In this document: one piece after another, positions 4,161 through 62,296 of the stretch
Layout: each line of letters opens with the position of its first letter
Position numbering within the stretch: the stretch's first letter is position 1
Source: Takakia lepidozioides
Lineage: Eukaryota > Plantae > Bryophyta
Reading direction: 5' to 3'
NCBI GenBank assembly: GCA_030704615.1
Contig: CM060731.1
Location: 18,228,001-18,292,000, forward strand
Length of the DNA: 64,000 nt
Position numbers and translations under genes: made by a program
Notes under the pieces: model-generated
The model's database searches: none
What the model saw: only the letters and a program-made list of their open reading frames with translations
What the model was told of the DNA's origin: nothing

Positions 4161-4168
4161 TTGAAAAA

Positions 4169-35716: not shown

Positions 35717-36051
35717 CACAAATCCAAGAATTATCTCAATATTTTTATGGATTCTAGTGTTTTGTCCTTTTTTTTAATGATAACTAATCTATATTAGAAT
35801 AATAATTATATTTTCTTTTGATTTATGCATAATAGTATAAAATCTATTCGGTTACATTAGTTGTATACTTTAACTTTCAGCTTTTTCCCTCAAAGGAAAC
35901 CAGTGACTTAAACCTGTGAATCTACGCCTCAGCCCGGCGGATAGATTACACTCGGTCCCTCAGTTATTTCCTACAATATATCAATTCAAATTTTCAAGTG
36001 TCCCTTGAATATTTCCATTAGTTAATCTTGTTGTAATTTGTGCACACTAGA
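35717..36051 (+). repeat. AT-rich dispersed repeat (copy 1)
   Basis: ACAAATCCAAGAATTAT..GATAACTAATCTATA..GGTTACATTAGTTGTATACTTTAA..GGTCCCTCAGTTATTTCCTACAATA..TGCACACTAGA recurs in direct orientation at 62032-62296 and partly at 62643-62735. Confidence 0.8.
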
Positions 36052-36105
36052 GATACGTGCTCTCTGTGCTTTAACTTGTAAAAGCTACCAATCATGTCCA
36101 TCTTT

Positions 36106-37470: not shown

Positions 37471-40004
37471 GCACATTTAGTTGACAAGTTTAATAGCAAT
37501 TTTTTTCTAAGTGTGTCATATGGTGTTGATAACATTCAAGACTATCTAGAATGTCATATCGCAAATCAAAGTCTCAATTTAATTGTCGAGGGTTTAGGGT
37601 CTAACCCTAAGTATTAAGGATTAGTGATTTAGTGTTTAACCCTAAGTGTTGATTAATTACATGAACAACAATATATTATCATTTTACTAGGCATTAGGTG
37701 GTCACTTCATAGAGGTCCGACAACATTGCTAATTGTGTGTTGACAATATCAATTTTGTGTGCCAAAGAGTTTTAGGCATCTAGGTGTTAATAATTAATTA
37801 CAAGAACAACAAGATAACATGTCTGGTTGCTATTTGTCCAATTCAATGAAATTTCAATTAAATGATCAAACTTGTCAATATTGACGCTTTGACTCGAACT
37901 ACCGTTTGCTATTCGTCAGGACCCTGCCGGATTGATTAATTTTTCTTAAAGAAGGGGTCTGGCAGCCTTTTTTTCAAATTCTGCAGTTCCGGCAGTTTCA
38001 CGATAAATAATTTAAAAAAGCACTCTTGGTGCATGTGTGTGTGGCTAGTGCAATGGTATTTGCAAATGAATATGGTGGGGCAAGCCTTGGGGCCGAATTT
38101 CTCTGACATTCGTTCTTGGGAAGGCTTTATTTTAATTTTTTCCGGCAATCTGTTTTTGCATTTAATTATCATCGGACAGCATAGGCAGGTATGGTATAAC
38201 ATCAATCATGGTACAAACATAATGATATCTCAATTGTATCATGGACCTTCTTGACAATTAAATTGACTGCAATTAATATGTCATCCAATTTATTTAATGA
38301 TAATTTCTTAAAAGTCTTGCTATAAAATTTCACCACAATTTTTGAAGCCCTTCGATTTTGTTTCTAAGTTAAATGATTAAATATGACTAAATATAATTAT
38401 TTTTCAATGTTATTTATCGATTGATTTAATTTTATTGTATATCAAGTTTGGTCCAAATTTAAGCCAAATTTGTATTTATAGATGTATGTTGGATGTAATT
38501 CATTATAGCCAATCTTAAGAAGGAGGTCACAGGTCAACCCGCATATTGACCCATGACCTCCTATATAAAGATATATGAGGACTTTTGTGTGGGGGAGAAT
38601 GGACAACTGCATTGCATTGATTGTGACAGTTGGAAGATGTTCACTTTGAAAAGTTAGTTTTAATTGAGATGAAACAATATAGTTATTTATGTTTGTTTTA
38701 CCAATTGTTTGTTTTTAGACATGGCTTGCCTATTATACTGATTATGACACCAAAATTTCAGAGGATTGTGATCACACGTCATGTATTTAGGCAAGGTTAA
38801 TTCAAATAGTATTTATCTATTTCTAGTTAAGCCTATTTACACTTATTTGTATTTTTGGGTATTAAATTGGACTTCATTTGGTCCCACGTGTCGTCTCAGC
38901 GTTGAATCTTACTTAGGTCATGGGCAACCTTAAATCTCCATGCAATGGGTGAAGGAGACTCATCTTCTTCTAGTTGAGCTTCCATAGCAGAAGCTCTTAA
39001 AAGAGAGCTGTGTGGTGAGGATTAATAACTAATTGATTCCTCAACCATGGTGTCATTGGCTTAACTTAGTTTATGTGATAGAGTAGTTGATGTGCACTTG
39101 TAAGGGAGAGAACCTGACCTGAGAGAAGCAAACTTGAGTACATAGGAGAGCTTGAGAGCATATTGCAACTCGAGTACTTACGCCCCCACAACATGATGGT
39201 TGCGACTTCGTTTTGCTTGGTCATATTTCTGACACCAATATTTTTATTGAATGACGCATTTGCTTACTGTGTGTATAATGACGCCTCATATGATATCACC
39301 GCCTTACAGGTACTCATGAATTAGTAGTTACGAGTCACGAAACCTACATGAAAGTGCATTGATCAATTGTAAAGTAATTTGAAATTATTCTAAAGTGTAT
39401 AGAAATAGTTGTAAAGATAAGTCCACTTCACATAGGGGAACTGTACTATTTTCCTCAACGGATCTGAAAAACACACTCACGACTTCCACAACTTTATGAA
39501 ATTCCACTTCATAGTCTAACAATTCTTTGAAAAATCCTCAAATTTCTATATCGTTTGTCATGGTCTTGATACCAATTAGATTGAAAGGGATATTTGCTTA
39601 TATCATATACAAAAATCAACAGTACTCTATAGGTTATCATGAGCTACAGAATTTTTTTAAATTTTTAGATTAGTAGGAAGTGAACGTAAGACTAGTTTTG
39701 ACCATAGTTTAAGATCTATCGATAGGATGTAACACCATTTTAAGTAAATTTGGACTAAAGTTTGGTCCAGAAATAAGGAGAAATATCTGAATATGTATTT
39801 TTTAAATCATTTAAATAAATTTAAATGGATCGTTTTAAATATAAATATAAAGATATAAATAATTATTTGTCTATTAATATATAATATGAGCAATAAAGAA
39901 ACATTATGTATAAACTTCAGGAGAAAAAACAGTTTTTATTTGGCTCATAAAGCAAGTTCCACTGTTCACTCGACGTTTAGTAAGAGTTGAATGAGATACC
40001 AACA

Positions 40005-40206: not shown

Positions 40207-43200
40207 TCAATTAGAAAAACGGGTGTCGGGTGATAACTCGTCTCACGATCCGCGGCCTGATGGATGATTGGAGCACCAGTCATATCCGTAACCGCGACTG
40301 AGCTTAAGAAGGCCGTTACTATGTAACGTACAAGACAAATCAATCAAATATATAAGCAAAACATGGCACAATGACACAATACCATGAAATGAAATGAAAG
40401 ACAATGGGGAGACATTGATGATAAACAAACAGGTTTTATTTCAGAACCATGTCAATTTGAGTAAGTTTCGCCCTATGCGGCATGGACCAATACAAGTAAA
40501 TGAGAGTATCAACTTCTAGAAGGAGGGCTGAACTCCGCTAGCACAAGACGATGTCGGCCGACGTACTTATGATGAGAATATTTTGAGGAAAGTCATTTCC
40601 CAAAATCACGATATTTTGACAAGGTTGAAGGGACCATTTTCAAATCTGTATTCTTCCATTGTTCCGAAGGTTGATGGAAGAAGTCCCTGAAATGCTATCT
40701 CGAGCATCGTTGATATGGTGATGACCTCACAAAAAATATCCTCCAATATTACGCCAACCAACAATGTCTTGTGCGACCAAAGTTCAGCTGTAAATCTCGA
40801 AGAATTGGTGGTCTTGCAGACTTTCAGTGAATCGCGAATATGATGAATTACTCGTATGCTCTTCAAAACATAATGTCCAAGTAACTGACCCTGGAGTAAG
40901 ATGCTAAAAATATCCAATTGGGGAGTAAGTATGCTGCTCGTATGTTTCTGGAGAGTGGCTCGGTGGCGAGTACGTTGATGGAGAGAGTGACGTTTTCTGC
41001 GAAATCTTCAAGGAAATAGTGTCGGGTAACCAGTCGAGGTTCATCTGTGACGGGCTGTGGTACTTCTGACGATTTACTGTAAAGCACTCGTAAACTGATC
41101 ACCAACTAAATAATCTCCAACTGACTAACCACCAACTAACTGATTGGAGCTGTCACAAGCAATGTCAAAAATCCTATTTACTGCTAGGTGTTTGATGCTA
41201 TTGTTGTTCTTGTAGCTGAATTGTATAGTAGTCATTTTGCTATTCCCATGCGAACAGTATCAGGTCCCCAGAGACTGTCATATTCAGACTCCCGTATTAG
41301 CCACGGCCCACCATCGTTGACCAATATTAAATTCATCAGCTGCATGTCAGCTGAGAACTAGATCTTCGATTCATTGTATGCGACTCCAGAGAAACACCCT
41401 AGCCCACAAGTAGTTGGCCAGCAGCTTGAGATATTTCTCTGGACTGTGATTGAATGAACTGGAGATTTCATTTCTAGCTGATGGTGTCATGTAGGTGGTG
41501 CCTGATTCCGATTTCGGAAAATGGCAGTCTCAGTGGACCTGATGTTGTTGGAATGAGAATAGCAAAAAGACTCATATAGAAATTAACTATATGAACATAC
41601 GCAGTATCAAGCACCTTGAAGTACATATAATTGTTGAGATTGTTTGCACAGATTGTTAGCAACGGTGTTCCTCCTTTGGCGTCCAGTTCAAACGAGAATG
41701 TCGCTGGAGATTGACGTTCAATTGCTGACATTCTGCCTCCTCATAACACCATTTTGGTGTGCAATGATGGACATCAGAATAGGTCAGCTCTTAGAAAAAG
41801 CACGCGTGATCGCGCGATGTTAATCGTTGGTGTTCCTCAAAAGAATAATGGATCTCCAAACGAAGGATATAGGAACCAAATAAAATACCACGATGATGCT
41901 GTCAATTGTTGGAGATCGGATTATGCAAGCAGGGATAATGACTTCAAACAACTTAAAGACTAGGATTATAAGATACTTGAACAATCCGTCAGGGAACAAG
42001 TGACACCATCAGCCTCGATGATTTGAGTGCGTGTTCTACAACACAACAATGAATCATCCAGGATGATGGTGTGAAATATTCCGGGACGGATTATCCGAAT
42101 ACCTTGAGTTCCCTCGCTGTAACTGACCTGAAGTAACTCACTATGCCTGCAGAATCATCACATCTTCTAATGACAGCATTTTCGTTGTTGAATGCGTGAG
42201 CATAGGAAAAACATCACTCCGACCAATCACATGTGGCATTGTTGAGGTAATATAACACTTTGGCAGTCGGCTGGAGAACCAGGACGATGTTGAAGTCCGC
42301 TTTTCGAACCACGAGTGACCACGCGATAGATCTCTGCCTCTACCACCATTGAGAACCACAACGAGCCGAGTGCATCCAGATTTCAATCAACCACAAGATG
42401 GCCATCAATTCGTCAGGGAAGGAATTTTGAAGCCGCCAAAATTACTTCAATCCATTTGAAGAGAGATTTTAACAGAGCTTCATAATCCGCTCAGGAACAA
42501 ATGAGACGACCATCGTGGGAGCTTGAATTACGAGGTAGGAACCCGAATTCAGTCATAGACGATGATCGTGTCACTTGTTCCCCATCGTAATATGAAAACA
42601 TCGGAAATTTTCTTCTCCTCCAACCTCCTCCAGCCTCCAGCCTGATCTGTTATTGCTTAAACTGACAATGAAGTCAACTTGTTTTAATAACATCTGATGG
42701 CACTGCTGATCCATGCTAGCTCCACAAGAGGATATATGAAGGAACCACGCGTGATCGCGCGTGATTTCTCTCAAACTTCGATGACTAACATTACATCCGA
42801 AAGGATCTGGCATAACATTGACAGAGTTTCTTCCCATATGTGTGTAATGAACAGGTCGGCCATAGTTTAATTCATCAATAACACAGAGTTGCTTCCCAAA
42901 CGGCTCACACTCAACGCATATGTTCGAGATCACCGTCGGATACCACTGATGGCGGAATTTTGTACACCCGAGGAGATGGATACAGTGGGAGATTGATGTA
43001 GGATATGAACAGACATCTCACTGGCAGCTGTACTTGAAGACCTTGACAAACGTAAAGCCTCGCGGTCCCTCCACTCAGCCTTACGGTGCCGTTCCTCTTT
43101 CTTCTCCTGTCGAATTTGATTCTGAACTTGGCACTGGAATATAACTGTGTGGAGGCAACACAGAAGGGAATTGATAAAGAAAATACAAAGATCATTGAAA

Positions 43201-43309
43201 TATCATTGATCTCACAAAAGTCATGTAAAGTCAACAAACGAAAAAGTACAAATGGAGGTTGAAGTAAAGCTGATGGACTACACACAAAATCGGGCAATGT
43301 TAAACTACG

Positions 43310-44030
43310 TACCCAGATAATCGGGATTTTTTTGAGGAGGGTGCCAAACAGAAGCATCAATAAATCTTCCAAACCAGGACCAGTAGACATGATTTCGACC
43401 TATCGGAGGGCAGGAAGATTTGCAGGAGTTCTTGTCGACGTAATCAACAACAGACTAGGCTCCAATCAAGCCAGAGAGAAAAGGCCACAAAGTTTTGGTG
43501 AGGTCAACCAAATCCTCCAAATTGATTGATTCCTTGAATGTGATGGGGAAGACTCCAGGATTCACCGGGTTTCGGAGTGCCTTGGAAGGGTCATCGTCGA
43601 CCAGTAGAATTTGCCCCTGCTTAGCAAATTCTTTCCCACTAAATTTTACGAGAATACTCTTAATATCTTCAATAAGATATTTCATTCCAGGCTTAATATG
43701 TCCAGCTGTATCTGTGCAATGCTCGGCAGACCATATGAAACGAAATTGTTTCATAATTTCCGGAGGAACAAACCACTCCAACATCTTGAATACAGTATCC
43801 AAGACCAAATCGCTACATGAAAATGAGTCAATGCAAGTAAAAGAAACTTCAGCACTCCAGGTCTTGGAACCCACAATGGTCTTGCGGGCACCCGAAATTG
43901 TTACTTTCCTCAAGTGGAACCTCTGTTTAAACAACTCACCTCCGGTAGGAGGTGGCCTGTAGCAAAGAAGTCCATTGACACTCAGTACCAGCAACATGCG
44001 TTTGTGTTTCCGGACACCACACATTTCTTG
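43310..44030 (-). pseudogene. FCP1/SCP-homology (NIF, HAD-fold CTD phosphatase-like) domain carried by the element
   Basis: KRMLLVLSVNGLL corresponds to family motif I LLVLDLNGLL. An alternate frame at ~43800-43875 reads WVPRPGVLKFLLLALTHFHVAIWS (RP..FL..F.V.IWS motif). Also FIWSAEHCT, ILLVDDDPSKALRNP..GVFP and, past a TAG, SVVDYVDKN..PIGRNHVYW. Two compensating frameshifts and one stop. Confidence 0.82.
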
Positions 44031-45719
44031 AGTAACAACGTTCTGAACCATCCAAAAGAGCCCATTAGTTTTTGTTATCTGACCCAAAAATTAGGCATTT
44101 CCAATACATTTTGCAACTCAAAAAATGCCACGACACTTGCGTTTTGTGGTTTACCTCGTTTCTATACCCTGATTTTCAAATGGAATATTTTGCGAAGGTA
44201 ATATTTTCAGCATTACGACATCCAATTGAGACTTGAGACAAAAAATCACAATCGGGAGTCTCTGAGTTTCCTGCAACCACGCGCGATCGCGCAAGATTAC
44301 TTTGTGAAAGTTGTGTCAACAATGTAAATGATATATGTAATTATTACTAGGAACCCATAACCAATAAGACAGAGGACCAAATGAAGGAGATACTTATTAC
44401 TTTTGCTAGATTTACCCTCCGATTCTGAGGCGGGTTACCACTGGAGGCAGGTGAATGTTGAAGGGATAACAGAACGCCAGATGCTGTTTTTTCATGTTTC
44501 GACCGCTGCTAACTGCTGTGATCTTTGACGTTTTCTTGACACAGGACCATCCGGAATTCCGAGGGGTTGGGGATGTGCAGAAATATTTGCCGGTATTGTC
44601 AGTGTGGTGACCTCAGTCGGCGAATGATTGAGTTCAATAACCTTCTCGGTGACGGTTGACAATGGAACTCGATTTCTTTCTTTCTGCACATCCTGAACCG
44701 AATTTAAACGGAAAAAAAAAGATTGCCTTGGAATACAACCCCACAGAAGTTGTCGCTTCACAGGAAGGTCATACGTTGCAGATTTTCTGGTCTGGAGTGA
44801 AGAGAGAAAATCAGAGGATGAACAGAAACACGGTAACAATAAAACGCATGGATGAAATAGAAATAATTCACCTGACTTCTCAGCAGCTGAGGTGTCCAGC
44901 CCTCGTGATCCGGTGACCCGCTTGGAATTACGACATGATGAGGAGAAAGTTGAGCGATAGTTGCAACCAATTGTTTGGTAGACTCATGTAGATGCCCAGT
45001 GACGGCGTCTGGTGGAAAGTGTTGGGAGAAGGACGGCTCCAAGGAGGATTCCCCAAGATATTGAGAGTCGTTCTCCACCATGCAGCCAACCTCAGTTAAA
45101 TCATCGACCCTGCTAACTGTGGATTCACCTTTTGACATTTTGAGCTTCGAAACAGTCTCCATAACAGCAATGGATGCCTGAGTAGACACAAAGTTGTCAT
45201 CTTTGCGTTGGACAGCTTGGGAATAGTCGTGTGGTGGATAGATCATATCATCCTGCCCATTAAGAAATAATTATTAATTCATTGGAAGTTTTTCGCAATG
45301 GAATGCAGAAAGGAAAGCAGAAGGCGGAGAATGAAGTACCAGCTTTGGCGGCACTTGCTCAGAGCCGGATGAGGTTTTGCCGCCAATTCCACCGACGATG
45401 GGTCTTTTGCCGTCCGGAATGTTTTTGTCGACCCCTCCCATAAGTAACCTCGCGCGATCGCCCGTGGTTTCTGAAGCTGCCACCATGGGCGACGATATCC
45501 TCACTCTCAAGTTGTATTGTTTTTTCATTGTACGCTGTTCTGGTATGTGTCACTTCCTCCGTATTGGACTCACAGATCTACAGAAAATGCGGATGATTAG
45601 ACTTCCGTATAAATTTCGATTCATTTACGAGACTATCACTGTGCAATAGGTTCATAGTTCCATTGGTAAAAGATTCTGATGTTATATCAAGTTTGTTATA
45701 AATTGGGTTTTACAAGTGT

Positions 45720-48700
45720 CAGGACAACTTATAATTTGCAATACTCACTTCAACAGAGTTTTGATCGCCAACCAATGCTCTAGAAGCCTGACCATCAACG
45801 ATGTCTCTAACTCGTTGGCTTAAACCTTGATATGGTGACATCCATAATGGCATATCCTCCTCCACAGGACTAAATCCCATCCCTGAGTCTATTTCTGAAA
45901 TCTCCTTATTGAAGACGTATCTAGAAGGAGCGTTATCCTTTACATTGTCTACCACCACTTCTTCAGTGGAGGAAGACAACACAGTTGTCTCGGGATTGTC
46001 TCCTTCACGGGTATTTGTCTGGGCCTGTGGATAGTGGCTTTCTTTTGGTACTACCCTCCCTGCTTATTCAGCTGGTGGATTTCTTCCTTGCTCAATTATT
46101 TCTGTCTCCTCTTCCAAGAAATTGTTGACTGCATCATTGTGTTGATAGTCGCCATTTCCTTCCTCATCTCCCTCATGTCATTCATTTTTCTCCAACGTTT
46201 CGTTTCCGTCACTTTCTTCCTGGTTTTGCTCTGTCTCCAGATCTCTTTGTCCGTCGTCTTCATCGTCATGTCATCGTCATCGTCATCGTCGTCGTCATTT
46301 CCTTCGTCATTATAGTGTCCGGAGCCTTAATCACTGGTTTAATGGGGCTGAACATCAGCACTCCCTGCAGGTGCTCCTCATGGTTCTCAATCTGGGTAGC
46401 TGTAGCAAGAAATACGTAATCAAGACACATGAAAGGCATTGAAAATGACTTTGGCCGGCTCAAGTAAGGATTGTCGAACTCTCCAGGAAGATACAACCCC
46501 TGAAGCAGAATATACTTGTCTCGCCCCTCGCCAAACCTTATGTACGTGACGAAATTGGAAGAGGACCTCTGCGTCGAGAAGAAAACAAATGCATTGGGGC
46601 TCAGCTGCTGTTCGAAGAACGCATCGAAAATATTCTTGTAATTTCTTTGCATGAAAACAGTAGAGTCATCGTCACAGACTGTGTTGACGAACACCATTGC
46701 GATGTTATCGAAATCCCTCTTTCTCACAATTTTTAACTATGTTTTGGCATCCGTGAACCTCCGCTTCCTTCCAATGCACTGGTAATGTGACTTGAATGTA
46801 TCCTTGAGGTTGCTCATTTCCTTCTCCATGTCTTCAACCCTTTTCTTGCATGAAAGCATGTATTTGATGAGAGCATCACTCACTTTCTCGGTTTTCATGT
46901 TCATGTTCACTTTGCTTTTCATGTATTTGGCTCCCAGTTTCGATCGGAATGTCTCGAACTCCAACTTGTTGAACTTGTACATTTTCTTCACTTCAAACCA
47001 TTCTGCTTTTGTGTACGGCTCTGGATGCTGCTTGCTCCTGGCATCATATCCCAATACCATCATAACATCATCGATGATAAACCGCCTGTCCTTTATTCGA
47101 TCGATGTAATCGGACAAGCAGAGAATCTTGGGGTCTTTTCCGTTGTAAGGACCACGAACGCAGATCTTCAAGTCCAAAATCTTTTGCGCAACCTTCTTCA
47201 TTTGAAGGGGGTTCAATCCCTGGAGTTTGCAGACTGCAGATTTGTTAGCTGCGATTGTACACCCTTGTGCTTCTTTCCGTTAATGTCCAAGAGGTTTCCC
47301 TTCTCCCACTCTCTGAAAACCTCCTGCCACTTCTCCCAAACATCGTCATCGCAAAGGACCAAGGTCATGGCCTCCTTAACGCTAAGCATCTCCAATATAA
47401 GTTGTGAGGCTTGCAAAAATTCCTGGTCAACAAGAATAGCATGTCAGGCCAACATACGACAGGGACACACAGTTCTAGTGAATGAACAACAAAACATTAA
47501 ACAATAAAGGAAGTCCGAATAATTACCTTCCACTGGACAGTTTCAAATTTGGAAACGTTATCGTTGAATTTCCTGGACTTCCCCCTCAACTCATAGTACA
47601 TCCTGGCGTGAGCAACTTTCTCCGGGAATGTTGTGTCGATTTTTTGGGTTTTATTTGGGTCGTTGAAGAGCTTGGAAATCTTCAGCAATTGATTATTCCT
47701 ATCTGACCAGAGGATAATTGATGGCCATTCGGCGTAGTAGTCCCTCTGCTCCCAGTCAGTAATCTCCTCCACGAATTCTTGATTTGGAAAATGTTACATC
47801 GGCATGGAATTCAACTATAAAGAATCACGCGCGATCGCGCGTGCTTGCTTATCATGCTTTGCATGTCTATGAAACAAGTCGTCGATGCATCTGATATAAT
47901 CATCTAGTAGAAGCACGCGCGATCGCGCGAGAAGTATAATGAGGAAACGCAAAAAAATATCCGAAAGATGATTCTCATAGAAGCAGAGGAGAATATATAA
48001 GAACGCGTTGATGTACTATACCTTTGCAACCATAATTGTGTGTTGGCCTCCAATGACGAAGAATTTGGATTTGTTAATATCCTTCTGATGCCTTGGTTTC
48101 ATCGCAGACACCTGGGTTGGCACCTGTTCGTTCTTTGGCGCCAAATAGACGAGATGTTTCGTATCTAGAACCCGCAACTGGTATAGACGGGCTTTGACTT
48201 CATCTTTGTGATTGATATTCAGCGGAAGATACACCATGCTTATGGGAGCAAGTTCCATCTTTGAGATGTCAATTGATATTATGTGGTTGAACCCAAAAGG
48301 GAACATGTCTTTGTAGTCATTCTGCAGACTTTGATTCATCGCCTCGCATTTCTTCTTGTCGAAAATCTCGCCAGGTTTTGGCTTCTTGTTGTCATTCATA
48401 AATACAATATCGAGCTCTTCTTTCTTTTTCTTTTTGCCGACTGGCTGCTCCTCTTCATTCTCAGTCTGAGAGGATCCCGCCGTGGACTTCCGTTTCCCTT
48501 TACCCTTTGTCCCCTTCGCTGCCTCATCTTCTCGTTGTTTTCTGTTGATGTTTCCCTACGCATGGAGTACATCTTGGAAAATGCTCCAAGCTCGTACGAA
48601 TCCCTGAGCAGTCAGGGCTGCACCACCTTCAGGGAAAGTGAATCCCATCTTTACAGCTGGTTTCATCATTGCCTTGCGAACGCGATGAGATTCCAGAGAT

Positions 48701-49041
48701 AAGCCTAACGTCTTCTTCGCTCTACCATCCTCCAATATGAAAACCACCATCATTGGATTCTCCACGTCGGACTCCATCTCAACATCTTTAACATAGCCAT
48801 AATTAAGCTCCTTCACCTCCGCTCCAATCTTAAATGAAAACTTCAGTTGGTGGTCAGAAGGTACACCCACAGGATTTATTCCCCACTCGGATATCGCCTG
48901 GTTAAGAGTATACAAAGCTACGTGGTCAATGCTGAAGTTTGGCGATTTTGGTGAGACGAACTCCCCACATATCTCCTTGCATACGCCAACCAGGCAATCC
49001 GCCGGTATGTTTGACTGACGACTGAACATGAAACACAACAT
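45720..49041 (-). pseudogene. Large multi-exon accessory gene with basic NLS-like tract, ParB/Srx-like motif and acidic D/E tract
   Basis: ORFs 48556-49041 and 48016-48399 share a frame across one TAG (linker KGKGKRK..GKKKKKEE). FFVIGGQHTIMVAK precedes a GT donor at ~48021. Introns at ~47785-48021 and ~47424-47527. Coding continues through 47213-47416, 46737-47216 and 46266-46727 into a (GAC/GAT)n poly-Asp tract near 46260-46310. May continue to the FCP1-like exon. Confidence 0.6.
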
Positions 49042-49546
49042 TATGGTATCTGGATTAGATATCTCATGGCGTTATTTCAGGATTGAGAGGAAAGGCCGAA
49101 GTTTGAAACAAATCATAATGTTACGGATGTCAGACCAAATTACAAATGGGAATCCCACTAAGAAGAAATGGAATTGAAAGAAACTAACATACAATTAAGC
49201 TGGAATAGGGACATTCAATTGTGACTGCAATATGGAATAAATGGAATGGACTAAATCAATGTCACTATTAAACTGGAAATCTCAAAAGCTGCAGATCATT
49301 AAATTGGTTTAAAAAATCGTGAAGAATACTTTATTATTCAACAGTGAAGAATGAAAACGGAGACATTGTTGGCGTTTAAATGTACAATCATATATGCCTG
49401 CCTAAAACTGAGATGAAGGACTATATCATGGTGATTCAGGTCACCTCCATAAAGTGATCCTACTGATTATTGTATGTATTCGATGGAACCACGTCGAGAT
49501 TCTGAACTGGTTCAAGTACACTCCTGTGAGTCCGTGAAGAATCAAT

Positions 49547-50171
49547 CTATTTCTGATGATTCTGAATGTCGGAACTTACAGTTGACCTAGGTGTGTACTG
49601 TGCCAAAAATGAGGCCAATGCAGCCGACCCGAATCTGAGGTGGCTAAAGTATCCTATTGGTGAGTATTCTGGGGATCTCGGAGTATACTCTGGCGATGAG
49701 GGTGTATACTTTGGGGATGCCGGAGTGTACTCTGGGGTTGAGGGAGTGTACTCTGGTGATACGGGAGTATACTTCGGAGATTCGGGTGTATAATCTTGGG
49801 TATCTGGCGTATACGCGGTACATAGCGTAGAAATCATTTGATTCTGCCGATACTTCAGCTACAGGATCTCCGGAAGACCCTCCAAAGTATTTTTCTAGAA
49901 AAGAACTTAAAGCTGCTGACCCGGGAGGAACGTCGCAAAAATATCCTATTGGTGAATAATTGTCTTGATCGTCTGATTCAGGGGAGTAGGTGTCAGGCTC
50001 CTCTATGGATGGAATTGTAGAAACCGGAGATGATATAACATGAACTCCTTCGGAAGGTCCCGTCATAATAACCGTAGCTCCGCATTCACCTTGTGAGGAG
50101 GGTGAAAGCGTTGTCTTGTGTCCGGTATGTTCCATCTCTTTCTCCTCCCTCATCGAACACGAATCCACCAC
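49547..50171 (-). pseudogene. Small acidic Ser/Pro-rich ORF with RNA Pol II CTD-like heptad repeats (frameshifted)
   Basis: ORFs 49644-50171 and 49547-49837 join via a frameshift near 49840. Both contain the module YSPIGYF..GSAAL.SFL..Y, which flanks the heptads. Confidence 0.7.
49658..49813 (-). repeat. 21-bp tandem repeat encoding YTPxSPx heptads
   Basis: [52 protein letters not shown], compared with the Pol II CTD consensus YSPTSPS. Confidence 0.92.
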
Positions 50172-50585
50172 ATTGGAAGAATCATCAAGAACTCGTGCTC
50201 AGATACAGACTGTACAGAAAGAGACACGCGAAGAATGCGCGATCGCGCGTATTTGGTCCACAATTTTCCCTCCAATAACGTAAAATCCGATTATAAGCAA
50301 CAACGATGTTACTAAGCATGGCGAACAAAATCCATATACATGACTTTGTTCTTTCAGTCATATAAGAGTATCCTGACATCTATTATCCCAAGAAAATTCT
50401 TCTGAGTTGTAGCAACATCAGAACCACGCGCGATCGCGCGTTATTGAGTTGAGACACAGATGAACTAATTTCATCCCACTGCGAGAAGTCTACCAGAAGG
50501 ACTATTAAAGTACATTGAGAACATTGAGGATTATTCAGCTAGAAGTCGTTTTTATTTATATTTAGAATAAGACTGAAACGAAGAA

Positions 50586-52125
50586 GTCAAATTCGCGTTA
50601 TTGCGCAATGTTCAATAACTGCATAATCCTTAAAATTGCAAACTATGAGTTTATTGTCGTACTAATGAATGATTTCTTCGACCACTTACACTTTGGTATT
50701 AGCTACTGTTCGTTAGTTCTTCTGAAGGTGACGACTTGTACTGAATGAAGCACGCGCGATCGCGTGCGCACCTTTATACCATTCTTGGACATCACATCTT
50801 CACTGTCCAATCTGAAAGAGTGCTCGACATAATCGATGAACAACCTAAGCGATATTGACAACAAGTAATATGTCAAACTGCCCTGGACTTTTGGATTGAT
50901 ATTTGGATACTATTGTGTACTATTGTGTCCAGACTGAACACCTCCGCCCATCATAAATAAGAGTGACAATGCCACCACATATAGAAATTATCATACTCTG
51001 TGTGCATGGCAAGACAGATAAAGTGCGACGGAAGATTTTAGTTGACATTGTATAATGTGAACTAATGTCTTCCGAAACACTTTACAGTTTTGAGTATGCA
51101 CTCAGACATATCCTCATATGTGTCATCTAATTATCTAGGTATCAATGGTGTTGTTGTGGTCGATAGAATACAACTACCAACCAAATGAAGCACGCGCGAC
51201 TGTGCGTGCTTCTTCAGGGCATTCTTTCACATCACATCTTCAATTTCTCATCCAATGCAGTTTACTACGGAGTCAAATTTGCGCGATTGCGCAAAGATCA
51301 ATCATTGCATAATCATTTTAATTGAAAACACTGAGTTTATTGTCCTACTAATGAATGATTTCTTCGACCACGTACAGTTTGGTATTAGCCACTGTTCGAT
51401 AGGGCTTCTATAGGTGACGACTTGCACTGAATGAAACACGCGCAATCGCGCGCGCTCCTTTTAACCATTCATGGACATTACATCTTCACTGTCTAATCAG
51501 AAACAGTGGTCGACATAATCGATGAACAACCCTAGCGATATTGACGACAAGTAATATTTCAAACTGCCCTGGACTTTTGGATTGATATTTGGATACTATT
51601 GTGTACTATTGTGTCCACACTGAACACCTCCACCCATCATACATAAGAGTGACCATGTCACCACATATAGGAATTATCATATTCTTTGTGCATGGCAAGA
51701 CAGATGAAGTGCGACGGAAGATTGTTGACATTGTATAATGTGAACTAATGTCTTCCGAAACACTTTACAGTTTTGAGTATGCTCATATGTGTCATCTAAT
51801 CATCTGGGTATCAATGGTGTTGTTGTTGGTCGCTAGAATACAAGTACCAACCAAATGAAGCACGAGCGATCGCGCGTGCTTTTTCAGGGCATTCTTTCGC
51901 ATCACATCTTCAATTTCTCATCCAATGCAATAAACTATTGAGTCAAATTAGCGCGATTGTGCAAGGTTCAATATTTGCAAAATCCTTAAAATTGAAAACA
52001 TTGAGTTTATTGTCCTACTAATGAATGATTTCTTCGACCCAGTTTGGTATTACCTACTGTTGGTTAGTGCTCCTGTAGATGACGATTTTTACTGAATGAA
52101 ACACGCGCGATCGCGCGTGCTTTGT
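50586..52125. repeat. Tandem repeat, ~670-690 bp unit, ~2.3 copies, each unit with three palindrome copies
   Basis: Units start GTCAAATT at 50586, 51272 and 51942 and share GAGTTTATTGTC.TACTAATGAATGATTTCTTCGACC. Internal sub-repeat ATGAAGCACG..CATTC..ACATCACATCTTCA. Confidence 0.92.
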
Positions 52126-54587
52126 TCAGATCATTTCCTTGATGAACGTGCTTATTGGCCTCGCTCCAAGTCCTAACTAAACCATGTTCCGCAATACTAT
52201 CACTGAAATAAACACGGGCGATCGCGCAAGGTTTCTCTATGACTCACGAAATCACTAGGAATCCCTACTTCGAGAGGCACGTAATGCAGATCATGGAAAT
52301 AATGTGCATAACCGAATCGAGCCAAAAACACAGTTTGGGATCCAGACCTGTACAGGGTAAAATGAGTTCATGTGCGATCGCGCGTGAATGGATTGTGTCA
52401 TGGTACCTATACTGAGGCCTACACCATAGGCTGCAAACCCTAAACAGTTGCTAGCTGTACCTATGAACCCTATGAAATCAGAATTTCTCATGTCTCGAAT
52501 TCGGAGTCGTTCCTCAAGGAAAGCGTACATATCCCGAAATCTTCTACAATTCCCAATCCTTCTATTGACCATCCTACCTCTTTAACTCTGGAATCAATCC
52601 AAAAATCAAAACAAGAAATCAAAACAATCAAAACAAGCAAACAATCAAGCAAACAATCAATCAAGCATGCAACTTCTACCTTCCTGCAATCTCTGCAGCC
52701 CACAGAAGAATCCCTCACTGCATGCACGAAGGGCTGGATGAGCTCTCTTGCTCGGGTGCGCACAACAGCTTCCGAGATAGCGTACTATCTTGCCCTCCTT
52801 TCACTCTGTCACACTCCCCGCACACAGTGAATTGCTCAAACCCACACTCACTCCAATTCATGCTCCCTCGATCTCTCACTCTCTCGCTAACTCGATCTCC
52901 ACCTCTCTGCCTCTCTCGCTCAGCCGCTTTCTCTCGCACCTCTTCCTTGAGTCCAAAATTGAACAGGGCTTCCGCGTGTATCAAATGAATGCAAAAGGAG
53001 ACTCCTTTCGGTCACTCATCCTTATATGCCTTACCACCTGTGATCTCAACCGTCGGTGTTATGTCGCATCCTACGGTTTGTGGCCTCGATGCATGGATGA
53101 ATGAAAGGCGGGATGTTTCGCAACGGTTCGCTGAGGACCCCTAAATTTATGCAGGTACAATCAATGATGCGACATGACTGTCAGTAATGAATGGACTCCA
53201 CTAGTTTGTCCAGAGCGTTACGGCGCGGCAATCCGACGTCTTCATAAAGTGAACACCCTGGAATTATTGCGGATTCCCGTGACGGCGCTCATCCATGAGG
53301 GGAGTTGAATCATCCACTAGGGTAGTCATCTCATCCAGTATACGTCTGTTTCATCCGTGAAAGCTCTTATTTCATCCACTGATAAAAATATTATTCATAG
53401 GTTCAATAATGAGGTGTCGGGACGTGCATCTGGGATTTGATCGGTCTCACGTTTTCTCTACCTACACCTCATCTACGACCCCACGTTCATTGCGGCTACT
53501 TAATGTCACCATGCCATAGATGGCCGTCGGCTCATCACAATGGCCTTAAGAGGCGGCCACTTTCGTCGCCGACTATTCCTTCTCTTGTATCATTAATTCA
53601 ACATCGGATTTTCTGCTTCTCTGGTGCTTTGGATGTCAGATTCCAGATCTCGAATTAGTTAGTTATTCGCATTAGATGCAATAACTTAGGGACCCATTAA
53701 TGTTCGATGGATTTCAGACTCCTACTTGAATTTATGCGCTGGAGGACACATAAGAGCCACTAGATTACACGAAAGAGCATATCCAGGGCGACAATTTGTC
53801 GATCCATGACACTCCAAACGCACCTCTGTAATGTGAACACGTCGACCTCGTACTGTTTGACAATCCGTATAAGAGCCTGCCCTATGCACACTTGCCATTT
53901 TTTCCCTCTCAGTTGCTCTGGCTCGCTGATCTTCAGGACTGTCTGTTTTACGTTCATTCTTCCCTTTGTACTCCTGTCAATATTGAGAGCCTCTCCACAT
54001 CATCTGGGTTTCTCTTCTGTCTCTCTGCTCCTCTATTCCTATCCACTGTCTGCAAAGATCTTACATACACACCCGACCGTTTTATGTACTTCGAATGATC
54101 ACTCGCACTCCAGCTGTTTCGTTCATCTATGTTTCATTTATTCATCCATTTGCTTACCTGTCATCCGAAAGTCGTCTACCATTATTCATCCGTCCTTCAT
54201 TTCATCCATGTGAACCACGCGCGAACGCCCGTCGATGTGGTTCTATTTCTGTTATGGAATCGTACACAATGTTGTGCATTCGGGTCGTAGCTTTAGCATA
54301 TCCTTTAATTTTCTACAAATTTTTGTTTCGACCAATAGAGACCTACGTTCTACATTCTAGTAGACAATCCAAGAGTCCGAGTTCTATTTTCAATTTCCAA
54401 ATCATTATAACCCTAAACTCGGGCGATCGCGCGAGGTTTTTTTTCATCTTCATCCTCAGTTTTTCTAAACAAACTTCAGTAACTTATTGTTTCACTATTT
54501 CTTAGTGTCCATCGATATAGTGTCGAATTATTAATCACCAGAATCTCTACTGTAGGATACACGTGCAATCGCGCGAGGTTCGTGGAA

Positions 54588-57500
54588 ATGTCGTTGTTCC
54601 AAACTGGTCAACAAGTTCTCCTCACTCTTCAGGGCTCCAACTCTATCGTCGCAACAGCAGAATGTCTCAACGTGACTGGTTGCGGAAGTTGTCATGGACG
54701 ACAGCTAAACGGGTCCACAATATCTGTTGTTATAGTGTCTTGCGATCCGGCACATTCTTCTGTGTCGTTGCCATATCCGCACATGGATGCGGACTCTTTG
54801 GGAGAAGCAATCGGAACACCTGTCGTTTGGGATGTGGTGCAAATTCAAAAAGATACTGGGACTGACACCAACACCAACACCAACAATGAGGTTCCTCGGT
54901 TCTCGGAAGTCGAATTGCCATCTGCGGCTGATTACCATCCAAAATTCAATGAACAAATTGAATCTAACATGTCAAGGCCGTCTCCGAATAACGATGTTGC
55001 TATGGGTAGATACAGTTGGAGAAATAAATTGTGTATTCTCTTTGGAGATGAACAAAGTGCTTTGTACGAGGGCAGAATTCAAGCATGTTATCCTGACGAG
55101 GTGATACTTTATGAGAAAGTTGGAGAACATCACGTCGGGGTACTCGTTACAAGGATTTTGAATGGTGGTTCGGCCAATCTCATGTGTCTCGTGAACTGGC
55201 CATTGACGCAGACTCGGTTGATTGATAGTAGCAGGACATTGTCATATGAGCTTCATAGTTTCATCAATAGCCGGGAACAAACAGATATTGGTCACAACGA
55301 AAAAGGTGTGAAAAAAGCAGCATACCAGCATTTCAACAGACCAAAAAAAGATCCGAAAAAAGACGATTCCAAAAAGATAAATACTCGCCTCTCTCTGCAG
55401 GCAGTTCGAGAAATTAGCAGCAAACAATGTTGCAATTTACAGTGTTGCCAATATTTCGGCTGGAGAAAAACACTCGCTATCCGGACTGCTTCTTGGGGAT
55501 CCTCTTACGACGAACAGAGAGAGCTCGGTTTTGATGTTCCCAAAAGACTTCATCGAATCGACGGGGTTTCGACAAAGGCCTACATAACCATTGAGAGCGT
55601 TGATGTGTATGAGACAACTTGGTGGACAATTCACGGAATCGGTCGTTCAACCTACATGGAATACAAAAAACTAAGCAGAGAGGGTGTGGTTACATCTTTG
55701 CACGGGAATTCCGGAGTGAAACGGCCCCGTCCACAAACTCGTCAAGCTGAAGGAAACTTAATGTCGATTATAAACGGAAATTCCGATCTCATGCCTCATA
55801 AGACCCGCTGTATGGAAGACGGATGGAGAGATACTCTTCGAGTTCTGCCACCTGAACTGAACTGGAAAAAATTCGTGAGGAGTGTAATGAGGTCAGTTCT
55901 TCTTCTTTTTACCACTTTCCGAATTCTATATTTTTTGGGACCTTCCCTGTTTTACTTCCACGCAATGTATCAGACCTGTCACTATTAAAGCTCGGGTGAT
56001 CGCACGAGGTTCATTTCCCCCTTTCTGTCTTGTAGGCGAATAAAATATGTGGGTTGAAGCTTATCTCCCAGGTAGCCGTCAGCAGAATCAGACAACAGAT
56101 TTTTCCCAATGTCGAGGTTAGAAAAAGTGGTAGCACGTTTGCCAAATGCATAGACTGTGAGATGCTCAAAGACCTAATCAAGAAGTCAGTCAAACGTAGC
56201 GATGAGCAGGCCTCGCACAAGAAAGCACTTGATAAGCACCTCAGGCTTCAAGAGTCTTGCAGGAGACTCTATCACAACTGGAGGAATGAGTCAGTTATGA
56301 TGCCGTCCGAGTTCCTCTACATCATTCATGACAAGATGGATCATCGGAAAACAGCTATTCCAAGGTTGTAGATGACGAACAAGATGGTCTCCGGCTTAGG
56401 TCAGCTTCCAATCTCGCTAACCGGCATGGTCACCCACGGCCACGGGGACGGAGCCTACGGACAGTACTCTCTAGACTTCTGGCCGGGAGATCCGAACTTC
56501 CCGATTGGCTCTCTAGCAAGATGCCTCCGCCAACTAGAGAAGCCCTCTTGCCGTGAAAGTCGTAACATCTTTGACCACCTACCTCAGAATTCATTTTTCG
56601 AATCTTTCATGAAGGGTAAATCGAGGTGTCTCGACGTCCTGAAACCTTTCGGCGATAAAGAGAAGAAAAAATGTAAAGTCCCACTTCCGCGAAGAGTCTA
56701 CCTGCAGATGGACAACTGCGTGAAGGAAAACAAAAACAGGTGGATGCTGGCTTTTCTGTCGCTCCTAACTGCGAGAGGAGTGTTTGAGGAGATTCAAATG
56801 GGATTTCTCATGGTTGGCCATACCTATGAGGACTTCGACGGATTCTTCAGTTATTTATCGAAGAAGCTAAAGCAAAACAGCACCTACGTTCTCTCCGATC
56901 TTATGAGGTTTTTTACGATCTCTCAAGATTTGCAATTTATTCCTCAAATCATTCAAGAGGTGCCAGATTTCAAGGCGTATGTGGACGGTTGCATTCTCGA
57001 TGGAAAAGAGGCTTTAGTCGGGCAAACAGAAATGCATGTATTTCGATTCTATGTAGATGAAGATGGTTGGCCTGTCATGAAGTTTAAGAAGTTTGCTACT
57101 GATTCTGAGTGGCTCTCCAAAAAAGGTGTGGTGAAGATGTGGATGTCGAATCCCGATGGATCTCCAAAGTTGCCTGTAGCAGTACAACTCAGGGCTGTAA
57201 AAAAAACACCAATTTGGGGTGTGAGAGATGACTCATCCGATAAACAGTCTTTTATCAAAACTGGAATTAAAAAATACAGGGAGTTCTGGAAGAAGGGGAT
57301 GTTGCTTAACGATCATTATCGTGATTTCATGATACAATATGATCAATACTGGGAAGCAATCCTTGCAGAACTTGATCTTTCCATTCCTGGAGAATCACGA
57401 CATTCAATCGCGCTTAAAGAGGGTTTTTGGCCCTCAACCAAGTAGGCTGTCAACCACCACAGAGCCGGAATTCATACACCTGCAGAGGATGATCTGTCGG

Positions 57501-57968
57501 AAGAAGATGAAGTCATGGAGCCGTATTGTGGCCCCTAGTGTGATAGACCGAAGCAGCCTCTAAATCCGTTCAAGGACATTGATAACGGATTCTTCGTCTT
57601 GGTTCGACCAGTAGATACTATGATGTTTCCAGTTTGGATGGGAATGACAATATCGGATGTGGTTCGCGACAGAGGATCCAGTTAAGAAGGTCTATGTCGA
57701 ATGGTGGAGACCCAAAAAATGAGGTAGCCCTTCCGATTTGGACAGGTACAGAGATTGTTGGTCCAAAGTTTAGGAGTTCAATCTAGATGATCCCCCTCAG
57801 TGGATTCACATTAACTCTGTCGTTTGGACAATGCATGCCAGGAAAAACACAACACGTAATAGCTCTAAAAAAATTACCGCAGTGGAGGCGGAGAAAGCAT
57901 GAACAAATTTGGATGAGGCTAAGTCAGACAATGAAGACAATGCAACCTCCGGCGGAGAACAAGGTTGA
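54588..57968 (+). pseudogene. Sola-like DDE transposase (decayed, one intron)
   Basis: Cys motifs CCNLQC and FAKCIDC. Catalytic-type motifs IIHDKMD, VYLQMDNCVKENKN and FLMVGHTYEDFD. GT-AG intron at 55892-56035. Frameshift near 55870 and premature TAGs at 56369 and 57443. The C-terminal part (FFVLVRP..PVWMG..VEWWRP..YRDCW) runs to TGA 57968. Sola assignment rests on motif resemblance. Confidence 0.8.
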
Positions 57969-58739
57969 CAAGGACATATTGTGGAGGTTCACTCCTCGAT
58001 ATCTTTTCAAGAATAAAACTAATGTTTTACCTCCACTCTCCATTTATTTATCTTCACGTCTTATTATTTACGCATGCATGTTCTGGACTAACGAATGTAG
58101 TGGCAGGGATGAGCTCTTCAAATATTAATCTACCTTCTTTGCCAGCCACCAGCTTTTTTCCGGACCTCATCTCTGTAACGTTTCAGGATCCTCGAGTGAT
58201 CATCCGGAGTTCCTAGTTTTCCTGATGTCACTGCTTCCTTCTCTTTGCAGTTCCTCCCTCACATTACACCCATTTCTTTTGGTTCTCTGGTTCTCACCAA
58301 AGTGTCTTCTCCTCAACAGATTCGCCCATCTCCTTAATTCTCGGTCCACATGGTCGTATTGTTGGGCTCAATATGATTGGTCTAAAAAATATCCTGAGTA
58401 TAAACCGCGTGGTAATTTGTGAAAGTTGTTACTTCAATGGACAAGCTTTCTCGCGGTTTACTGATTCTGAATCTTGTCAATCTTCTCCCATTACTCGTCA
58501 GTAGCTTTCTGTAAGTCTGGCTTCAAGTACAGAGTTACATTTCCTTTACTGCCTTTTCGGACTATCTTAAGATTCTTCTCAATTTTCTTCGTCACTAATC
58601 AGTCCTGAACCTCGCTTTGCCACCCGTTATTCCGTGTCATCGCAGGTCAATTTATCTTGGGTCTGTTTATCTTATTAGGACCTTCTAAAGACAATACTTT
58701 TGGGGCCTTCAGTCCTTACATTGTCCTCACCTTAAATCA

Positions 58740-59480
58740 TATACCCTAAACCTAATTCGAATGTTTGATGCGCATTCTTCAACGGTTACAAGGTTGGGCA
58801 TAATAGAATGGCCCTTGAGATATTTCATTCAAGTCTAATTTCTTAGGTGACAAGTCACTTGTACACTTTCCCAGATTTCTGTCATTTTTTGACTCACATT
58901 CCATAATTGTTTGTCCATTTATAGTTCTCTAAACCCTAAACCCTAAGCCCTTAAACGTAACTCCCTTGTTTGATGCACATTCTTCGTAGATTAGACAATC
59001 TGTGGTTGGAAAATTTTATTCCCTAAACCCTAAAGCATAAGTGACAAGTCATCTGTACCTTTCCCAATATTTTCTTTTCCATTCATACCGAGTACTATGG
59101 TTAGTACCCTCGCAAACTCTATACCCTAAAACCTAATTTCAATGTTTGTTGCTTATTTATTTATTACTTCCAATTTTGGGTACGGTCGAAGTGGTGGGGA
59201 TAATATTTCATGAATTGTTCTACGTATGGGTAAAGACTCAAACTCCATAATTGTTTGTCCTTTTATAGTTTTCTAAAACCCTAAACCCTAAACCAAACTC
59301 CACTGTTTGATTCACATTCCTCATAGAAATTTGGATACAATCTGTGGTTGGGATATTTCATTAACAAATTTTCATAGGTGCCAAGTCATCTGTACACTTT
59401 CCCATATTTTCTTTTCCATTCATACCAAGTACTATGTTTCAATGTACCCTAGCAAACTCTATAACCGAAAACCTAATTCC
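58740..59480. repeat. ~340-380 bp tandem repeat rich in telomere-like CCCTAAA
   Basis: TCCATAATTGTTTGTCC..CTAAACCCTAAACCCTAA occurs at ~58900 and ~59244. ACCCTAAA(A)CCTAATT occurs at ~58743 and ~59122, with a variant at ~59463. GACAAGTCA/GCCAAGTCA..TGTACACTTTCCCA occurs three times. Confidence 0.75.
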
Positions 59481-62031
59481 AGCTTGGTTTAATGACTTTA
59501 TAACTGAATCTACATGACATTCTTCCACAATATTTGGTTGTCATATGACCATCGGAATGATCCCTAAATATTTTGAAACATAATTCACATGTTTCATAGA
59601 AATCCAACCTTATTCCATTCAACGTTTTAATCCATCAATTGAAAACTTGCAATACATTGGTTCATGGTACTACTATACTGTAAGCATGGTATGAATGTTT
59701 ACTTTTCATTTGTATATTATTATCTTCTTGAATCATCTGTTTATGTCATACATCTATCAATTTATTAATAACTTCATTCAATCGATCTTATCTTTATAAT
59801 TTTCTGATGCAAAGTACGTCATTCGACTTACCATTCGATGTTACATGAATGGGATTGTGCAACTTCACAAGTGAAATGACTCAATATTCCACGATATTAT
59901 TATTAATACCTGAATTAATTTTAAATTATGTTATATATTAAGTTTGGTCCGGATTTAAGCCAAAAGTCCGGAATTACTTAAAATAGGGTTATGTGTTTGA
60001 AACGATAATCAAATCAAAGTTTGAAATTAATTCTCATAACATATATTTTTTCAACTTCGGAGGACGAAAAATATAATAATATTGCATTTTACTACTTCAA
60101 TAAAAATTATGGTGATATTGCATGTTATCATATAGTATTCACATAATCATCTCCACAACGTGTCTACAGCTCCCAGTGACAATGAATTCTTTCAAAATTA
60201 TTGTATTTGCGGGTAGCTATGAATGAGTTTGATTGTACTTTCGTGGATTCGACCAATGTTGGTAATCCGCATACCGATCAATGCGGAACAACCGCATTTG
60301 CAATCTTTAAGTATCCAATCGATTTGACAGATGACAACAACAAATTATGGAGGCACAAAAATATCTTCTGAGTACCATGAACTTAGGCCATTAGATGCCG
60401 CACATCTCCTAAGAAATATCCACATTGGCTACAATTATCTCCCAGACTTTATTCTGAACGTGATCAACGGGGGCATACTTGAGCATGACTACAATGGTAA
60501 CGATATCCCGGTTTCATGTTGGGAAGGAACATGCCAAGGTCCAAACATCAATTGGGACGGAAGCATAGGCCCTCCTTCTAATATTTGCCCTAATGGCATT
60601 GCCTAAAATGTGACTAGATTGTTTCAGTTGGCATTCATCTATATTATGAAGGAAAACTACTACACAAATAGTGTGTATGATATTAAATAAGTTGCATGGA
60701 TATGCATTGATATTTTAGAGGTTTTAGAGCATGTGGCTAAGGATGCTAGTAAGAGGACCTAAAATTGAATGCAAAAGATAGAATAAGTTGATGTGATAAT
60801 CAAGAAAGTTTTCCATTTTTCTAGTTGAAGAATGACAGCTTGCAGTATTGTAATATGAGCCAATTTTCATTGAAATAATTAAAGTTTGAGGGAAATTTTT
60901 GACTTACAGATTATAACTCCAATTCATGGATTCAAAATGTTCAAATTAAGCATACAGTCAATCCGATAAGTATACATGGAAATGTAATACTTGGAAGAAG
61001 AATATTGGCATAATAAGAGGACAACTGAAGGTATTGGGTGTGCATTGGGTTTCATCATTCGTTGTTACAATCAATACATGAAGCAAGGTAATATGTTGGC
61101 TCTCCTGTAGAGAGAGACTATGCAACATGTTCAAGTACTCAATGGAGAAAATGTTGTCAAAGGACCCTACAACGTTTCGAGGCTCCGATTAGTGTGTTGT
61201 GCTGAGTCATCCCCCATACTTCCACCTTCATTTTATGTTTTGCCAAAGCAAGAGAGTCGATCGCCGTTTTAGGCTTGTTTTGTTTTGTTTGTTTTGTAGC
61301 ATCGTTGAGATCTCCCAAACCGTTAGGCCTGTGCCCGTGGTCTTGATATCAATGGAAAGCTCTCAAGGAGTAGGGGTGCATTGAGGTGGTTTCATAATTT
61401 TGGGACATACGGGAGATGAGATATTGAATTTCAAGTAATTTTTGTTGATAGAAATTCATGAAAATAGCAGAGTGGGTTTTTCTGGAATATGAAATGAAGA
61501 GTTGATCCGTTATATTTAGTGTACAAATGTTTATATGAGCATACCATGATAGAGAGATGGAAAATCAGATTTCTACATGAGTATTTAGTTTATTTTCGGT
61601 AAGTTAAGATATCCATATGAAGAAGTAACTAAGCACTTGGTTGGGTTACGATCACCCTCCAACTCTTAATGCACCGATTGTTGCTGATCCACCTGCAAGT
61701 CTTATATTTCCAAGGTTTTTTACTTTACATTTTCCACGGTTGAGATCCAATATCCCTCTTCATATTTACTAATGATTTGAACAAGCATACAATAACTCAA
61801 TGTGCACTATTCGAATTTGTGTTGTGGTGTATAAAATATGTCTTTATGATTTTTTCACATTCCATCAACTACATATCAGGCACATTAAGACTCTAATACT
61901 ATAGACTTATAGCTCTTTCCAACTAATTTCTCCTTGGTGCAAATTAATACATGAGTCAATCTCCCAAAAACAAAAATCCAGGATTTTCTTTTTTAATGCT
62001 TGATCATGGCATTTTTTTTTTTTTTTGAACC

Positions 62032-62296
62032 CACAAATCCAAGAATTATGTCAATATTTTCATGGATTCTACTGTTTTATTTTTTTTGTTTCTATGATAA
62101 CTAATCTATACTAGAATAACTATTAGATTTTTCTTGATTTATGCATAATAGTTTAAAATCTATTTGGTTACATTAGTTGTATACTTTAAAATTTCCCTTG
62201 GTCCCTCAGTTATTTCCTACAATACTTCAATTCAAATTTCAAGTGTCCTTTGAATATTTGCATAAATTAATCTTGCTGTAATTTATGCACACTAGA
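62032..62296 (+). repeat. AT-rich dispersed repeat (copy 2 of 35717-36051)
   Basis: Direct-orientation homologue lacking ~70 bp of the middle. A third partial copy lies at 62643-62735. Confidence 0.8.

Follow-up and report, generated by a model that had tools for sequence, protein, structure and literature searches.

The closest described system to the one considered here is Sola1-1_Ec32 of Ectocarpus, a 21.5-kb element which carries a divergent gene combining ParB and an N4C/N6A methyltransferase, whose product is proposed to bind and modify the element's own sequence (PMC12477816). In Bostrychia, Plavaka PAG3 combines ParB with a 2-oxoglutarate (2OG) oxygenase, while PAG2 carries methylase and SET domains, and the same preprint describes VANC of Arabidopsis VANDAL elements as the only accessory system for which binding to, and modification of, its own element has been proven (bioRxiv 10.1101/2025.02.11.637652). 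More recently, a 2026 preprint reported the binding and activation of cognate copies by transposases themselves. Here we examine a 64,000-nucleotide stretch of the moss Takakia lepidozioides (assembly GCA_030704615.1, contig CM060731.1, positions 18,228,001 to 18,292,000; hereafter the window), in which the region 40210-59500 is a dead, decayed copy of a ~19-kb, high-copy plant DNA transposon. The family is best explained as giant transposons of the cut-and-paste type in a seed-free land plant, with a DUF7869, Sola-like transposase and a mobile accessory cassette. We tentatively read this cassette, at a probability of about 0.45, as a VANC-like self-recognition and activation system that would recruit host factors through non-catalytic modules, to which heptads resembling the RNA polymerase II (Pol II) C-terminal domain (CTD) would have been added as a further dock.

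The layout resembles that of Sola1-1_Ec32 as set out in the accessible part of its report: a DNA transposon of ~20 kb, with an accessory gene on the strand opposite to the transposase and a ParB-like part followed by a methyltransferase position, a likeness of description rather than of sequence comparison. The Takakia element differs in its land-plant host and in a methyltransferase slot that is degenerate or unrecognizable, and it adds to what is set out there an Asp-less domain of the NIF (FCP1-homology) fold, the CTD-like heptads and dispersed intronic palindromes. Bostrychia PAG2/PAG3 are alike in their ParB-like accessory gene, their family inverted-repeat arrays and a cassette moving between transposon superfamilies (bioRxiv 10.1101/2025.02.11.637652), and unlike in their EnSpm/Plavaka transposase, the PAG3 2OG oxygenase and the lack of any mention of a phosphatase. 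VANDAL/VANC likewise pairs an accessory protein with motifs that are specific to the family, lie in non-coding DNA and have been multiplied within tandem repeats (PMC5735166), a feature that the window shares. However, VANDAL elements use a Mutator-like element (MULE) transposase and unrelated domains, and neither a MULE transposase nor a VANC-type accessory domain appeared in domain scans of the window cassette and transposase; moreover, VANC function is demonstrated, whereas that of the window cassette is read from sequence. The original prediction regarded the combination of parts as undescribed. This still stands for the NIF domain and the heptads, for which a limited literature search found no description in such elements, but the prediction had missed the link to the published algal ParB-methyltransferase accessory genes, of which the cassette appears to be a variant. 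Within an incomplete coverage of the literature, we also found no paper on DUF7869, on moss or Marchantia ParB-methyltransferase transposons, or on transposon CTD mimics.

All parts named by the original prediction are present: a plus-strand DDE transposase facing away from a minus-strand cassette (probably spliced) with YTPxSPx heptads at 49658-49813, a large gene with a ParB motif and an acidic stretch (45720-49041) and an FCP1-homology domain (43310-44030). The transposase belongs to DUF7869 (PF25273) and is collinear with its homologues in loci L001-L005 and L094 from other genomes, and splice sites support its intron. Its acidic motifs HDKMD (56327), QMDNC (56705) and GHTYED (56816) fit the homologue consensus QLDN / GHTHEDI, and the DUF7869 protein, with these three acidic motifs, is a candidate DDD/E transposase of the Sola1 type. 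The predicted decay is equally evident. Stops at 56369 and at 57443 interrupt the transposase frame, which also has frameshifts further on; the large gene, with its GGQH motif and acidic stretch, is broken by an in-frame stop at 48556-58 in its first exon and by frame breaks at 47240, 46737 and 46265 in its third. Sibling copies, read in low-coverage DNA runs (genome skims) of the same species, have indels at the breaks at 46265, 47240 and 49816. These skims cover 44300-50250 continuously at summed depths of hundreds to thousands, so that the cassette, heptads included, is high-copy in T. lepidozioides. Their commonest differences from the window copy are G/C in siblings where the window has A/T, the pattern expected after methylation-driven decay.

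Copies in other plant-type genomes argue that the accessory parts belong together. The ParB-like exon retrieved seven homologues (P0049-P0055), and by this exon alone 80 metagenome loci were fetched, from samples which we take to be moss-associated; a metagenome scan with one protein alone gave no matches. Across 22 distinct ParB-anchored loci with at least 6.5 kb of 3′ flank, a NIF domain lies downstream on the same strand in 15, as one to three domains, and upstream or on the opposite strand in none; the other seven lack NIF. In L009 the order on one strand is N-terminal domain, ParB-like, helical, methyltransferase-like, acidic and NIF, and L012 repeats this order together with a palindrome of its own. 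As in the window, a divergent DUF7869 transposase stands directly upstream of the cassette in L058, L060 and L061; a CACTA transposase lies near it in L006 and L007, suggesting that the cassette may move between superfamilies. Among copies, the ParB-like part has a median ratio of nonsynonymous to synonymous substitution (dN/dS) of 0.25, the methyltransferase slot one of 0.31, the DLNG-type NIF 0.32 and the terminal NIF 0.35, whereas shifted frames and an intron, taken as controls, give 0.5-1.1; the pairs come from related, decayed copies and hence are not independent. The ParB-like and helical parts, the methyltransferase slot, the acidic or disordered linker and one to three NIF domains are collinear and under purifying selection across genomes. 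The prediction of a single element with linked accessory genes is therefore upheld by the linkage and by ratios that are not near 1.

The palindromes form the second thread. The CG-rich CACGCGCGATCGCGCGTG has 18 matches at up to 3 mismatches from 41801 to 54577, compared with 0.00 in shuffles, and a weaker copy at 55991 inside the transposase intron. The matches are confined to the element and fall mostly in non-coding DNA, in agreement with the predicted element-specific palindrome running through all of its parts. The palindrome, 14-24 bp in length, differs from one element family to the next and lies largely outside coding sequence, and multiple palindromes of this kind near the gene, as candidate cognate sites, are a ParB/parS-like feature. 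VANC motifs are short and non-palindromic.

The ParB-like part itself has a conserved I-x-G-Q-H motif, lacking the Arg after it, and its ParB identity is weakly suggested by this motif, the palindromes and precedent. The window N-terminal domain fits the profile of its relatives at E 6e-7 and the helical domain at E 4e-5, both above shuffles. Methyltransferase identity is likewise weakly suggested, by position and motifs; among homologues it is L009 whose slot is weakly detected, by PF01555 at E 0.022. Searches of PHROGs and the PDB and a phage tblastn gave neither a ParB nor a methyltransferase match. AlphaFold models reached confidence (pLDDT) values of 35 and 40, the latter for the ParB fold model, and were unusable; the fold search was meaningless.

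The predicted FCP1-homology domain does have the NIF fold (PF03031), although direct searches with the window open reading frame (ORF) found nothing in Pfam, the PDB or the homologue database. These misses arise because the stretch near 43869-43790, between two compensating frameshifts, is out of frame and contains the RPG..VAIWS hallmark; a stop at 43455 adds to the damage. In the ESM atlas, 27 of 30 matches for the window domain are to NIF; by BLASTP it matches an L009 protein at E 1e-10, itself a PF03031 match at 2.6e-13, and it fits the profile built on other genomes' terminal NIFs at E 2.7e-20. The solved structure nearest to the family profile is UBLCP1 (E 1e-3). NIF phosphatase activity requires DxDx(T/V) (PMC2559854). 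In every relative read, motif I of the terminal NIF is SVNG, NVNG, NING, GING or IING, with both aspartates gone, so the Ser at motif I in the window is a family trait rather than decay. DxDx(T/V) occurs in no family member; upstream NIF copies of relatives retain the first Asp as DLNG, which stands at motif I in 80 of 120 NIF homologues, and a search of the window for extra upstream NIF domains, the DLNG type included, found none. Compared with FCP1, SCP, UBLCP1 and TIM50, the family shares the fold but has DLNG or S/N/G-V/I-N-G in place of the catalytic motif, lacks BRCT (no match in the cassette segments scanned), is borne on a transposon and is often in tandem. The window type scores far under the NCBIfam cut-offs for FCP1_euk (TIGR02250) and Dullard-like (TIGR02251) proteins. 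The family may resemble the uncharacterised plant "C1271.03c-like" DLNG clade. The terminal NIF is thus a conserved domain that is probably a pseudophosphatase and no enzyme, and its maintenance by selection without the nucleophile is best read as that of a binding module.

The heptads at the other end of the cassette are, as predicted, real CTD-like repeats, the best PDB match of the array being the RPB1 CTD, whose distal part is the closest known sequence. They share with RPB1 the heptad period with Y1, P3, S/T5 and P6, and differ from it in having seven units, Thr2, a variable position 4, Glu/Lys7, no attached polymerase (only the repeat matches RPB1) and element-specific flanks. The array is flanked by two copies of a YSPIGYF module that occurs three times in the element, an arrangement that suggests amplification in place; capture from the host RPB1 is disfavored by these same flanks. 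Siblings carry two additional nucleotides at 49816 that restore one frame in the surrounding Ser/Pro-rich ORF. Because this ORF is followed by a T-rich stretch and an acceptor, the cassette gene may begin with it as its first exon. Between six heptad units, nonsynonymous and synonymous differences (pN and pS) are 0.15 and 0.56 (pN/pS 0.28). With position 4 set aside, second codon positions are unchanged and third positions take 8 of 10 changes; across all heptad columns the third-position bias has P=0.09, the omission of position 4 being post hoc. The heptads apparently are selected as protein, and many siblings carry the array at high depth in the skims. None of the 96 loci sampled from other genomes has a heptad array, L058 with its complete spacer covered among them. 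The heptads thus are family-specific and seem to have arisen locally, and the presence of NIF without heptads in those loci argues that the two are not an old co-evolved pair.

Table 1. Features of the Takakia element, in window coordinates.
Feature	Position	Strand	Basis or remark
Low-complexity/disordered candidate exons, acidic stretch to NIF	44400..45578 (approximate)	-	similar linker in L012, L044, L056
Candidate exon: conserved N-terminal domain and first half of ParB-like domain (GGQH motif)	48022..49021	-	splice sites; homologues P0049-P0055
Candidate exon: second half of ParB-like domain	47527..47814	-	aligns with L009 and L012; splice sites
Candidate exon: helical domain, methyltransferase-slot segment (46269-46736), acidic stretch	45749..47422	-	helical profile; methyltransferase likeness by position
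NIF/FCP1-homology domain, terminal Asp-less type, motif I SVNG	43313..44021	-	predicted pseudophosphatase
Probable last coding exon, charged then Ser-rich	42933..43145	-	inferred from splice sites and frame
Ser/Pro-rich ORF with the heptad array between two YSPIGYF modules	49550..50171	-	single frame in siblings
Seven CTD-like heptads, Y-T-P-x-[S/T]-P-[E/K]	49658..49813	-	PF05001 E 7e-6, above cut-off
Third YSPIGYF module copy, diverged, without heptad array	40790..41005	-	E 2.6e-8 by tblastn; 74% over 72 nt by blastn
DUF7869 DDE transposase gene	54582..57935	+	two coding exons, intron 55892-56035; Pfam PF25273 E 5.7e-41
Element-specific palindrome CACGCGCGATCGCGCGTG, 19 dispersed copies	41801..56008	.	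mostly introns and spacer
~680-bp tandem duplications, each with palindromes	50585..52121	.	in divergent spacer
~345-bp repeats with plant telomere-like AAACCCT motifs	58731..59481	.	probable right subterminal region

In the self-recognition and activation reading that we favor, the cassette would be one long spliced protein whose ParB-like part recognizes the palindromes of the family in the way that ParB recognizes parS and VANC its motifs. It would keep the element transcribable or unsilenced through contacts with host proteins, not through catalysis. The Asp-less NIF domain would serve to bind (phospho)peptides, and the heptads would be a convergent tail, acquired later, on which CTD kinases and CTD-binding factors dock. 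Several observations weigh against this scheme. The single long protein is pieced together from exons examined singly; profile and structure searches of Pfam, PHROGs and the PDB returned no match for the ParB-like domain; and the methyltransferase slot of the window shows no (D/N/S)PP(Y/F) or SAM-binding motif, an hhalign probability of 2% and nothing significant against methyltransferases or the slot of its relatives. The non-independence of the dN/dS pairs tempers the case for selection. Several 8-kb DUF7869 elements carry palindromes without any cassette, so that binding could fall to the transposase or to a cassette that acts in trans. Further, a search of sequencing runs found none recorded as RNA that contained the stretch, and the A/T bias of the window copy relative to its siblings implies that any protection was not lasting.

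That last set of elements also feeds the competitor to which we give most weight, although we consider it unlikely, namely that the palindromes belong to the mechanics of transposition: the ParB-like clamp or the transposase would pair or compact the 20-kb element or pick its targets, with NIF and heptads as scaffolding. The family palindromes in the cassette-free L001, L004 and L005 would fit this, as would the activity of transposases on cognate copies reported in 2026 and a window copy in which no terminal inverted repeat (TIR) was found. However, the cassette comes with a similar palindrome-like motif whether its neighbor is a DUF7869 (L058) or a CACTA (L006) transposase, and the palindromes lie in introns and spacer, not at the ends. 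Also unlikely, and ranking just behind, is a self-recognition cassette whose heptads have no connection with Pol II, being local amplifications of the repeated module's YSP/YTP start that are retained as a proline-rich, phospho-regulated disordered tract. The three modules with the array between two of them, the departures from consensus at positions 2 (Thr) and 7 (Glu/Lys), the lack of heptads in the other genomes and the marginal bias over all columns speak for such an origin; the exact seven-residue period, with Y1, P3 and P6 preserved through synonymous change, the closeness to the distal RPB1 CTD and the array's presence in many siblings speak for a Pol II connection. At the far end of such a connection stands a scenario more doubtful than either of these, in which a DNA clamp seated on its own palindromes displays a convergently evolved CTD mimic and a dead phosphatase-fold reader and thereby recruits or holds CTD kinases, capping and chromatin factors at cognate copies. 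If true, it would amount to anti-silencing through the CTD code, for which our limited literature search found no transposon description.

The original prediction of a cognate enzyme joined to its substrate mimic, an active CTD phosphatase that resets or titrates the CTD code as a coupled module, now looks very improbable. It draws on the NIF fold and heptads within one element and on the first Asp kept by upstream NIF copies of relatives, but founders on the absence of DxDx(T/V) from any member, the Asp-less state of the window type in all relatives read, the lack of a DLNG-type domain in the window, NIF domains without heptads elsewhere and scores far below the FCP1_euk and Dullard cut-offs. 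Least credible of all is that unrelated transposons and host pseudogenes came to be nested by chance. Ends and target-site duplication (TSD) are undefined, NIF is missing from some ParB loci and the cassette also sits beside other transposases; yet one palindrome runs through both genes, L058 has an equal divergent layout, depth is continuously high over 44300-50250, and the linkage together with dN/dS below controls makes nesting unlikely.

The ParB-bearing accessory genes of algae are themselves proposals for self-binding, and the present family brings that design to seed-free land plants while supplying matched protein/palindrome pairs for specificity swaps. For two of its features we found no earlier description: the Asp-less NIF domain, conserved and held under purifying selection, and the CTD-like tail, whose protein sequence is apparently selected. 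Should the tail indeed dock CTD machinery, the transposon would possess a mimic of the CTD of Pol II, which might also serve as a tool for sequence-specific gene activation.

Sola1 elements have TIRs and a 4-bp TSD, and neither a TIR nor a TSD was detected in the window copy, so the predicted ends at 40210 and 59500 are approximate and unconfirmed. An inverted 11/13 match between 40213 and 58625 was considered as a TIR and dropped as chance. AT-rich repeat families in direct orientation are common to both flanks (35726-38468 and 59914-62737), and the element may therefore sit inside an older repeat region. Within its left part, 133-bp inverted arms, 74% alike, at 41156-41646 are probably a small nested foldback element. 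CpG observed/expected is 0.92-1.07 over 50001-56000 (spacer and transposase 5′ region), owing partly to the palindromes, whereas the window's left half stays mostly at 0.3-0.65. That half also holds host-type plant genes with an ENT domain (1842-3074), a GIL1/IRKI C-terminal domain (10752-11462) and a glyoxal oxidase (13695-15329). LINE-like (long interspersed nuclear element) remnants (RVT_1, zf-RVT) and a repeat in inverted copies ~23 kb apart lie at 3596-5412, 27343-29151 and 21527-22783.

Among the relatives, the cassette-free DUF7869 elements of L001 (4862-13090), L004 (3423-12708) and L005 (4750-12916) are ~8-9 kb long, with dispersed palindromes, no ParB cassette and 44-bp inverted ends without a matching TSD. 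A second DUF7869 lineage (L003 12579-20620, L005 14720-17593) has methyltransferase-like, transposase and NIF genes on one strand and CTCGAGTCGAG-centred palindromes resembling those of L012. Finally, DUF7869 elements with their own palindrome GTGGGGAGGCCTCCCCAC (L094 1-8500, L096 9800-21137) abut bacterial mraZ/mur and flagellar operons, junctions that probably reflect chimeric long-read contigs rather than transfer.

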